Assembly (NCBI GenBank): GCA_010909165.1
Contig: MU008177.1
Span: 124,001 to 188,000 of the forward strand
Reading direction: 5' to 3'
DNA from: Anthoceros angustus
Lineage: Eukaryota; Plantae; Anthocerotophyta
DNA: 64,000 bases
How positions within the stretch are numbered: the first letter of the stretch is position 1; every line of letters begins with the position of its first letter. Made by a program: the position numbers and the translations under genes. Under the pieces are notes generated by a model. The model had not been told where the DNA came from. It searched no databases and was given only the letters and a program-made list of their open reading frames with translations. This document shows, in pieces, positions 5,676 through 36,741 of the stretch.

Positions 5676-6506
5676 ATATTCTGTCAGCGAACATAAAGTG
5701 GTGTCCTCCTCCTTGTAGAAAGAGTGCCTTGTCTAGTCGGGTGCTGAAGTTAGCTGTAGAGAGAAAGATGGAGTTGACCCTATCTCTTGTATGATGCAGG
5801 AGGCCTGTACACTAAGCGTACTCTGTAAGATGGGTGGGATAGCATCCGTTTAGTGGTGCCTGCAGAGGGTGAGGAGCGTATGCTTCTCAGGCTTATGTTC
5901 CTCTTGCACCTACTGGGATACAATTTATTCAGGGTGCGTGGTAGGTAACAGGCCTCCGAACTTGTAAATCAGCTTGTTGCTCCTCTTGTTTCAGAAGAGG
6001 AAAGTTTGCCAGCCTTCGAATTAAATTTATTTTGCCTCTCTCTTGTGCGTGTGTGCAACAGATTCATCTACTGGGGGAAACCACCTACAAACGGGGGCAC
6101 ATGTGCCAATTCATGTACAAAGGGGCTAAGCTGGGGGATGTATCAGTTGGTGGTTTGTGGGCATCTCTCGACCTATTCAAGGCTATATGTAAGGGAAACT
6201 TTTGGCACATGTAGACAATTATATGGAGGGTAGAATGTCGTACGCAGGGTCGGAGCATGATCCCTGTATAACAGAATGCGCTGCTACTTGTTGGAAAGTG
6301 ATCATGTAACATAACACATCTGAATATCGGCTGGGTAGTTGAGACGGGGCAATTCTTAGGTGGGGGTGGTATGATGTTAGATGAAGCCAATGGCAGGTCT
6401 CGCGTGTGGGACAAGGTTCTGGGGCAATAAATGCTACCCACAAGTCTCAGACTCTCATCAAACCCACACCTTATGATGATATCAGGATGGAAAAGCTTGA
6501 TACCAC

Positions 6507-34848: not shown

Positions 34849-36741
34849 ATGGCTATGGCGAGGACGAGGGCCTGCTGCACAGCAACGTTGTGCCTCGCGC
34901 TTGTGCTGGTCTCTTCTGCCCTCTCGGCAGCTCAGGTGCGTACGCACGCCCCTCCATTCACGCCTTCAGAAGCGATATATGGCTTTCTCTGTTTGTTCTT
35001 GCTGGGAGGAGATCTAGCCCGTGAGCTGCACCGGGGAGAGTCCGAATGTCGGGTTTGCTCGGCCTTGTGTATTATGAGATTTTGTGAGCCTGGTTTCTTG
35101 GCTGATGAAACGTTTTACGCTTCTGTGTTGTGGAAGCTGGCTTTGTGAGGCCATCTTTGTAGACGCTGCAGCAGTAGTTTGAGTGCTGAGTGGAGAGTAC
35201 TATTGCTATAAAACATGACCGAATTGCACGTAAACGATGGGAAAATTGTCACGCGGTTGAAGGATTGCACCGCATGATTTCACGTGTGGATCTGCTATGT
35301 CGCCTTGGATGTGCTGCGGCTTGTCACTCGAGGTGGCATTGCTGGAATGTTCTGTGTGACGTCGTCAGCTGATCTGATTCTTTCCTGTATTGCCGTGGGC
35401 GATGATGCCCTGTACATCTAAGCTCATGGATTTGCAATGGTTGTGCAGGCTAAGAGTAAGGAAAACTTGGAGGAGATTACCCACAAAGTCTTCTTTGACA
35501 TTGATATCGATGGCACCAGAGCTGGTGTGTTCTTTCCTCCGTCTCAGGCTGCAAGATGTTGTGTACTGAAGTTTAATTTAAGTGTGCTTGGCAATGTCGG
35601 TAACTTTGAATGAGGTTTGGGCTTTGCAGGGCGGGTGGAAATTGGGCTCTTTGGCAAAGCTGTCCCCAAGACAGTGGGTCTGTTCTGCACCCTTCACGTT
35701 TCAGTAACGAAAAAGTTTGTTTTTGTGCACTCCTCGTTTGATGTCGAGCAGCTGATGGTGATCGTGTTTGTGGTTCTTTCCCGTGCAGAAAATTTCCGTG
35801 CTCTGTGCACAGGTGCGAGTCACTGAATCCGTTAGAGTTTATACAAAAGGCTGTCATCCTATTCGACGTTGCTGATTCGGAATTATGCTGCTGCAGGTGA
35901 GAAAGGGAAAGGGTTGATGGGCAAGAACCTCCATTTCAAGGGGAGCGTGTTCCACCGAATTATTCCGAGTTTCATGATCCAAGGTGGTGACATAACACAT
36001 GGGAACGGCCGAGGTGGAGAGTCTATCTTCGGCGAGAAGTTTGCAGATGAGAACTTCAAGCTGAAGCATACTGGAGCAGGTATGATTCCTCGTCCTGACT
36101 CTGCCCTCTCCCAGGTTCTGCTGTCAGCTCGTGCTCATGTTGGACCCTGCCAATCCTGTGCAGGTATCCTGTCCATGGCAAACGCTGGACCCAACACCAA
36201 TGGATCGCAGTTCTTCATCACCACCGTCAAGACTAGCTGGTGAGTCAAGACTGCACCCGATCAACTCCCGGACAACCAGTCAGTCTCAGGGCCCGTCCGA
36301 AAGTAGGGGGAAGGGTCTTAGCGCAGTACGTAATCTGAGACGCTGTTGAGTCAGTCGAAGATGATCGTACTTTCCACTTGTACAGGTTAGATGGCCAACA
36401 TGTTGTCTTTGGGAAGGTGACGAGCGGTATGGATTTTGTTTACATGGCCGAGGGGGCCGGCAGTCTGAGTGGACACCCCAGAAAGACTGTCAAAATTGTT
36501 AAGTCCGGGGAGATCCCTCGCAGCAAGTGGAGACGTAACAGGCCTGGCCTGGTGTCGGTGTGAGTCGGTGACATCTCTGTTCTGTTGTCTGTCCGTTTGA
36601 AGGTTGGATGGCAGGCATGTGGTGTTCGGGAAGGTCATCGGCGGCATGGACGTTGTCTACAAAGTGGAGGCAGAGGGCACTCAAGGTGGAACTCCAAGAA
36701 AGACCATCTCCATCGCCGACAGCGGTGAACTACCTCTATAG
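34849..36741 (+). CDS. Secretory-pathway cyclophilin (PPIase) with two alternative last exons (stop at 36563 or 36741)
   Basis: Signal peptide exon; [61 protein letters not shown]. Last exon A (36386-36563) and last exon B (36603-36741) both begin LDGxHVVFGKV in the same phase. Confidence 0.93.

Follow-up and report, generated by a model that had tools for sequence, protein, structure and literature searches.

A cyclophilin gene with two homologous last coding exons

The subject of this analysis is a cyclophilin gene of the hornwort Anthoceros angustus that carries two diverged tandem copies of its last coding exon, here called exon A and exon B. It lies within a stretch of 64,000 nucleotides (nt) of the forward strand (GenBank assembly GCA_010909165.1, contig MU008177.1, positions 124,001 to 188,000), which we refer to as the window and whose own numbering is used throughout. 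We obtained the gene model by joining GT-AG boundaries into a single uninterrupted reading frame, in which six shared exons (34849-36239) encode a predicted signal peptide and most of the cyclophilin domain, followed by two intact exons that each encode the final ~45 residues of that domain. The parts of the gene are as follows:

34849..34935, + strand: exon 1, with the start codon and the predicted signal peptide (GT-AG model; the N-terminus aligns with that of the Nothoceros protein P0003)
35449..35524, + strand: exon 2 (GT-AG model; length and boundaries as in the related contig L001)
35630..35677, + strand: exon 3 (GT-AG model; matched in L001)
35789..35812, + strand: exon 4, a 24-nt microexon (ENFRALCTG; GT-AG model; also present in L001, in contig L008 and in the Cajanus CYP21-1 gene on contig L013)
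35897..36079, + strand: exon 5, core of the cyclophilin domain (GT-AG model; Pfam PF00160, E 1.6e-9)
36164..36239, + strand: exon 6, the last shared exon and donor for both acceptors (direct reading and GT-AG model)
36240..36385, + strand: proximal intron of 146 nt, to be excised for the A isoform and lying within the B-isoform intron (direct reading)
36240..36602, + strand: B-isoform intron of 363 nt, comprising the proximal intron and exon A (GT-AG model)
36386..36563, + strand: exon A, the alternative last coding exon, 58 codons plus stop TGA (36561-36563)
36564..36602, + strand: A-B spacer of 39 nt, with a pyrimidine-rich tract and the AAG acceptor of exon B
36603..36741, + strand: exon B, the canonical last coding exon of CYP19-4/CYP20-1 type, 45 codons plus stop TAG (36739-36741), followed by the 3' untranslated region (UTR)

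Exon 6 ends in ...ACT AGC TG/gtgagt (the slash marks the splice junction, 36239/36240) and is followed by two acceptors of the same phase that lie 217 nt apart, ttgtacag/G in front of exon A (36385/36386) and gtttgaag/G in front of exon B (36602/36603), so that the first G of either exon completes a TGG codon for tryptophan. Just 39 nt separate the stop codon of exon A from the start of exon B. The two exons encode 26 identical residues out of 44 (59%; BLASTP E 5e-19), a likeness far beyond chance, and this confirms the two-exon observation of an initial annotation made from the letters of the window: its shared donor, its two same-phase acceptors and its pair of intact yet diverged exons stand in sequence and translation exactly as described, and the single-frame model bears out its view of one gene with two paralogous terminal coding exons. 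Taken alone, exon A and exon B each match PF00160 over profile positions 117-157 of 159 (E 6e-6 and 27 bits for A, E 2.3e-7 and 31.6 bits for B), and both exons, like exon 5, exceed the gathering cut-off of 21.7 bits. Exon A supplies strand beta7, helix alpha3, the loop after it, strand beta8 and a PRSKW tail that carries a lineage-specific extension of 10 residues; the tails of the two exons differ (...SGEIPRSKW... in A, ...SGELPL in B).

The same annotation had called the pair mutually exclusive exons, of which the tandem arrangement of homologous copies with a common 5' phase holds. The other half of that term does not apply, since constitutive exons do not flank the pair on both sides: each copy closes with a stop codon and no coding exon follows B, so that they are better described as alternative last coding exons or alternative 3' splice sites.

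The active-site residues of cyclophilins are, in CypA numbering, R55, F60, Q63, N102, F113, W121, L122 and H126. All of them are present in the window model under the correspondence of positions that we assume for the family, with LDGQH in exon A and LDGRH in exon B. Because the active-site leucine and histidine of LDGxH are kept in both exons, both isoforms are expected to catalyze prolyl isomerization while differing in surface and tail. The N-terminus of the model is hydrophobic, and the corresponding segment of the Nothoceros protein is modelled as a helix; this signal-like segment together with the B-type C-terminus places the gene among the CYP19-4/CYP20-1 cyclophilins of the endoplasmic reticulum (ER) and secretory pathway.

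Both endings in hornworts and a moss-like lineage

The stop-free stretch over exons 5 and 6 (35836-36240) matches thousands of cyclophilins. The closest full-length match, P0003, was assigned by cluster look-up to the hornwort Nothoceros aenigmaticus and is 85% identical to the B-type model. It is isoform i3 of a Trinity gene (208 aa) with the B-type end ...SGELPS, while P0272 is isoform i1 of the same gene (211 aa) with the A-type end ...SGEIPRGKW and an A part that is 90% identical to window exon A. The two proteins fall into the same 90% cluster and are identical over residues 1-163, and each carries a single ending, A in P0272 and B in P0003. The precise joints of exon 6 with A and of exon 6 with B are both present in a hornwort transcriptome, which bears out, for a related hornwort, the claim that both exons join the same upstream exon. 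A third Trinity isoform of this gene, P0002 (i2), has a B-type end and is missing its first 76 residues, along with the signal peptide; its sequence begins with ME..STFLAGEKG and probably derives from a retained intron or an internal start.

Isoform A of Nothoceros aligns end to end and without gaps with solved cyclophilins (E 2.6e-75). Its AlphaFold2 model, calculated from an input alignment of mostly B-type sequences, has a predicted local distance difference test (pLDDT) score of 90.5 overall and of 93-98 in the segment that exon A encodes.

A word search with exon A gave a single match, P0121 (88% identical), which stems from the 44-kb Logan contig L001. The gene on this contig has exons of matching lengths, including an A exon (6009-6156) and a B exon (6219-6357), and in a tree of the shared part the window, L001 and Nothoceros group together at 100/98. 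The introns of the window and L001 are barely alignable, apart from partial conservation of the last ~45 nt upstream of exon A, where the acceptor context TGTACAG/GTTAGATGG is identical; the A-B spacer is not conserved and measures ~62 nt in L001 against 39 nt in the window. Exon A itself is 85% identical in nucleotides and 88% in amino acids, with 0.081 replacement differences per site (pN) and 0.371 silent differences per site (pS; Fisher p 1.6e-4), at a distance at which the shared exons (pS 0.77) and exon B (pS 0.73) have reached saturation at silent sites. Residues that the two hornworts have in common are specified by identical codons in 29 of 37 cases in exon A, compared with 15 of 36 for exon B (p 0.002) and 21 of 54 for exon 5. 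Exon A is, as judged from these comparisons, under purifying selection at the protein level with an additional constraint on silent sites, and such extra silent-site constraint is the usual pattern of regulated alternative exons.

The silent difference between exon 5 of the window (35897-36079) and of L001 (5487-5669) is extreme (pS 0.97) and points to a strong shift in codon usage and in GC content at third codon positions (GC3) between the two hornworts, beyond elapsed time. The genes that flank the cyclophilin gene in L001 (SNAPC1-like and pentatricopeptide repeat (PPR) genes; L001:1-10101) are without counterpart in the whole 64-kb window; the neighbourhood is therefore not conserved and synteny lends no support. 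A Pfam search of the neighbouring open reading frames (ORFs) of the window returned no matches.

In L001 and in Nothoceros, exon A ends directly after ...KW (with TGA in L001). In the window this conserved TGA has become AGA, and the frame extends over 10 codons (36531-36563) to a TGA that is embedded in a perfect consensus donor, GT/GTGAGT (36559/36560). Since this donor formally permits an in-frame splice from A to B across a 43-nt intron, exon A might be a cassette exon that yields a protein of 268 residues with a repeated C-terminal quarter of the domain. For all the perfection of the donor and the open joint, we regard this as very improbable: the intron would fall under the usual plant minimum, L001 has no such donor and stops right at KW, and the Nothoceros isoform A likewise ends at KW, with no form that contains both A and B among the cluster members.

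A search of the full library with an exon-A profile also found P0133 and P0273, from contigs L010 (ENA) and L008 (Logan). On both contigs the shared exons are followed by an A-like exon, a spacer of ~840-900 nt and then a B exon. The shared part of L008 adjoins Sphagnum in the tree (93/74), which points to a moss-like plant as its probable source. Over the domain part of exon A, L008 and L010 differ at 3 of 132 nt, all of them silent, so that all 44 A-encoded domain residues are identical, whereas the divergence amounts to 11-16.5% in introns (p 6e-6) and to 6.5% in exon B; the exon A tail after ...GELP evolves at an intron-like pace. By these measures the two-ending arrangement is kept under selection in at least two bryophyte lineages, hornworts and a moss-like one, and the A exons of both probably share one old origin.

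The dual-exon structure that the initial annotation proposed to look for in other land plants was thus recovered in L001, L008 and L010, but the examined orthologues of Riccia, Sphagnum and Diphasiastrum have a B exon only. Moss clusters (49 members read) gave B-type endings only, and we note that A-type isoforms are concealed within clusters whose representatives are of B type; a word search with the A part of P0272 gave nothing useful. Among the candidates that we rejected was an ORF in the last intron of the Sphagnum gene (L007:6403-6564) that reads ...HPVIISDSGEMPKHSW and recalls an A-type ending: as a decayed A exon it fails, because 11-33 of 200 shuffles score equally high at the DNA level, and it has no similarity to the A exon of L008. 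A metagenome scan with the motif MAEGxGSxSG gave two chance matches, neither of them a cyclophilin. The CYP19-4-like genes of Physcomitrium patens (L003:3001-3615), Ceratodon purpureus (L011:2501-3118) and Calypogeia fissa (L012:2501-3175) are intronless and look like retrocopies of B-type mRNAs, while the genes of Sphagnum, Riccia and Diphasiastrum retain introns.

This distribution raises the alternative that exon A is an unused or decaying duplicate in Anthoceros angustus, its intact frame a leftover at a locus that makes the B isoform alone. That B is the canonical and much better conserved family type, that three orthologues have B only and that the ancestral stop has been lost from window exon A would all agree with it. 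We nevertheless consider it improbable, as exon A exceeds exon B in nucleotide conservation both between the deeply split hornworts and between L008 and L010, with replacement change (dN) well below silent change (dS), and as an A-type mRNA is present in Nothoceros and the acceptor context is identical in the window and L001. A second alternative is that the A splice form is mainly regulatory, the proximal acceptor diverting pre-mRNA from B and exon A being kept for splicing enhancers or structure in its RNA rather than for its protein. The low pS of exon A among hornworts (0.32-0.37, compared with at least 0.73 elsewhere) and the codons retained at 29 of 37 positions are what this alternative would predict, but replacement changes per site are four to five times rarer than silent ones, L008 and L010 combine 3 silent changes with 44 of 44 identical domain residues, the frame is open in five of five A exons, and the product models as a complete cyclophilin. 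Between hornwort and moss-like A exons, moreover, silent sites are near saturation and yet the motif MAEGxGSxSGHP is retained. We regard this second alternative as improbable.

We therefore favor the reading that this is a single secretory (ER-type) cyclophilin gene whose last coding exon exists in two old, diverged tandem copies that are chosen alternatively, and we consider it likely; the feature as such is real and conserved and very probably functional. After the shared exon 6, the spliceosome would pick one of two acceptors. With the proximal one (36386), the mRNA would read exon A and stop at 36561-63, leaving the B sequence in the 3' UTR; with the distal one (36603), exon A would be excised with the intron and the mRNA would read exon B. 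The choice would be one of alternative 3' splice-site selection in the last intron, and as the stop codon of the A isoform would lie in the last exon, no obvious nonsense-mediated decay is to be expected. The A-B gap of 39-43 nt would be too short for a normal plant intron, which would keep A and B from being joined; 43 nt is below the usual lower limit for plant introns. In the moss-like lineage with its long A-B gap, separate polyadenylation after A would also be possible. We infer that Anthoceros angustus splices both forms. The isoforms would have the signal peptide and some three quarters of the cyclophilin domain in common and would differ in the last ~45 residues (beta7, alpha3, the loop after it and beta8) and in their C-terminal tails. 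That they also bind different partners or are retained differently along the secretory pathway is a reasonable guess.

Three points weigh against this reading of alternatively chosen endings. The excess conservation of exon A at silent sites would equally fit a role at the RNA level, the stop that the window has lost behind KW may signal that constraint on the tail is beginning to relax, and the Nothoceros evidence comes from a de novo Trinity assembly that is known as protein sequences only. For the Nothoceros isoform i1, a chimera of two loci is unlikely because the same genomic layout is found in two other hornworts.

Affinities of the two endings and the origin of exon A

As the initial annotation had proposed, the sequence of exon B assigns it unambiguously to the CYP19-4/CYP20-1 type. 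Identity is 84% with B-type endings of a lycophyte (Diphasiastrum), a liverwort (Riccia) and other plants and 82% with Physcomitrium CYP19-4, and B exons score 103-106 bits with a B-type hidden Markov model (HMM) compared with 65-69 bits with a CYP21 HMM (102.8 and 65.6 bits for window exon B).

The companion claim, that exon A mimics the ending of angiosperm CYP21-1, fared less evenly. On the one hand, the best library matches of the exon-A profile are terminal exons of CYP21-1 type (~80 bits, with B type at ~66), including Cajanus CYP21-1 and a CYP21-1-like protein of Tanacetum. Exon A and CYP21 have in common an E/Q in LDGxH, GAG..SG(K/H)PRK and SGEIP+xKW, and in a tree of 50 columns that includes the tail, hornwort A exons and CYP21 group at 99/97. 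On the other hand, this grouping is lost when the tail after SGE(I/L), with its PxxKW, is left out of the alignment: the five A exons (hornwort and moss-like) then form one clade (97/94) and CYP21 forms its own (95/97). Compared with the CYP21 terminal-exon signature ...AIEGGAGTYSGKPRKKV.IADSGEIPKxKWDEE, exon A is without the extra loop glycine and the acidic tail. Its scores of 78 bits with the CYP21 HMM, 70-73 bits with B-type and 74-76 bits with general HMMs amount to a preference for CYP21 of 2-8 bits only for hornwort A exons and to none for moss-like ones; the moss-like A exon scores best on the general eukaryotic cyclophilin HMM. Approximately unbiased (AU) tests rejected none of the topologies compared, namely A with CYP21 (p 0.46 and 0.34), all A exons together, hornwort A with B (p 0.13) and A with all B (p 0.09). 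The unrelated match P0201, too, has a PxxxW tail. A specific link of A with CYP21 is thus plausible and rests largely on a short tail motif.

Upstream of the last intron, the shared exons of the window are of CYP19-4/CYP20-1 type and lack the CYP21-like sequences HRIISGF/PGF..., FPDENFKIKHSHAG and MANSGPDSNG, while CYP21 proteins sit on a separate long branch. A fusion of paralogs, which the initial annotation had offered as one possible origin, is disfavored because these shared upstream exons are not CYP21-like. The shared part of CYP21 nevertheless lies, on its long branch, inside the clade of land-plant ER cyclophilins, and Cajanus CYP21-1 (L013) is likewise divided into seven exons, among them the 24-nt microexon, with a last intron of identical position and phase. 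No B-like relic was detected within 4 kb at the Cajanus locus, and L014 is a stand-alone CYP21-type gene; an ESM Atlas look-up of CYP21-1 yielded no taxonomic range. The structure of Cajanus CYP21-1 is compatible with descent from the same ancestral gene, by whichever route.

For the origin of the pair we see two accounts. According to the first, which the initial annotation had already considered, the gene with both A and B is ancestral in land plants, and CYP21-1/2 and CYP19-4/20-1 are its two splice forms, fixed as separate genes through duplication and the reciprocal loss of a terminal exon. The profile matches, the shared GAG..SG(K/H)PRK and SGEIP+xKW motifs, the tree with the tail, the exon structure of Cajanus CYP21-1, the place of CYP21 within the ER-cyclophilin clade and the presence of A exons in two bryophyte lineages all argue for it, but A and CYP21 become separate clades once the tail is removed, the HMM preference is small, CYP21 has an extra loop residue and the AU tests reject nothing, so that we put this account forward as a tentative and rather doubtful one. 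The second holds that exon A is an old tandem duplicate that arose at or before the split of hornworts and mosses, its likeness to CYP21 consisting of retained ancestral or convergent features. Here the joint clade of five A exons apart from CYP21, the best score of moss-like A on the general eukaryotic HMM and the PxxxW tail of P0201 speak in favor, whereas the tree with the tail, the ranking of the database matches and the shared GAG, KPRK and EIPxxKW motifs speak against; we take it as a serious possibility that stops somewhat short of being probable.

Apart from these questions, the microexon (35789-35812) stands at a conserved position in the hornwort, in the moss-like L008 and in Cajanus CYP21-1 (L013:7372-7407), and exons as small as this one are easily overlooked in annotation. 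Intron 5 (36080-36163) is 84 nt long, in frame and free of stop codons, so that gene callers based on ORFs do not stop at it; on plant genomic contigs, such read-through has produced many artefactual database "proteins" of 124-143 aa (P0001, P0004-P0007, P0015 and P0025).

Related systems and significance

Like the gene in the window, plant CYP19-4 (CYP5) and CYP20-1 (ROC7) combine a signal peptide and a single cyclophilin domain with the catalytic motifs, and moss, liverwort and lycophyte members match its shared exons plus exon B at 75-85% identity. For Arabidopsis members, location in the ER/secretory pathway has been either predicted or demonstrated (PMC6358970), and CYP19-4, CYP20-1, CYP21-1 and CYP21-2 of Arabidopsis are all predicted to be ER/secretory proteins that differ in their stress responses (PMC6358970). 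Unlike in the window, no alternative A-type ending has been described for CYP19-4/CYP20-1, and full-text literature searches found no description of a two-ending cyclophilin arrangement. Angiosperm CYP21-1 and CYP21-2 share the seven-exon structure of the window gene and the terminal-exon motifs of exon A, but they are stand-alone genes with diverged upstream exons (HRIISGF...), an extra loop residue and a DEE(R) tail.

Substitution of tandem-duplicated homologous exons, including mutually exclusive exons, has been described mostly in animals (PMC9741552, PMC8373072, PMC9013439). The hornwort pair resembles these cases in having two old copies of which one would enter the protein and an alternative exon that is unusually conserved, silent sites included. 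It departs from animal mutually exclusive exons in being terminal and without a shared downstream exon, so that alternative 3' splice sites could suffice and the unused copy would stay in the 3' UTR or in the intron. Splice isoforms of one lineage can also be separate paralogues in another, a form of subfunctionalization (PMC4417111, PMC4494069), with Marchantia CLU as an example of such exchange between isoforms and gene duplicates (bioRxiv 10.64898/2026.03.13.711532). Compared with these cases, a single bryophyte gene has two isoforms here, of which B corresponds to a distinct angiosperm subfamily and A resembles a second one, with a correspondence of A and CYP21 that is not secure. The kind of phenomenon is known, and the hornwort cyclophilin is a new and well-conserved plant case of it with a terminal-exon twist.

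Few kinds of alternative splicing have a clear function at the protein level; the choice between tandem homologous exons is one of them, and well-supported plant cases are scarce. In this gene the exchanged segment makes up a quarter of an enzyme fold that is well understood, and as both Anthoceros and Marchantia are transformable, it offers a compact and testable system for the role of the C-terminal face and tail of an ER cyclophilin. Annotations of hornwort genomes will probably list one ending only, or fuse or split exons A and B. If the link to CYP21 is true, the locus would be a dated plant example of splice isoforms replaced by gene duplicates, and if the arrangement is ancestral in land plants, hornworts and one moss-like lineage would still run the ancestral alternative-splicing solution.

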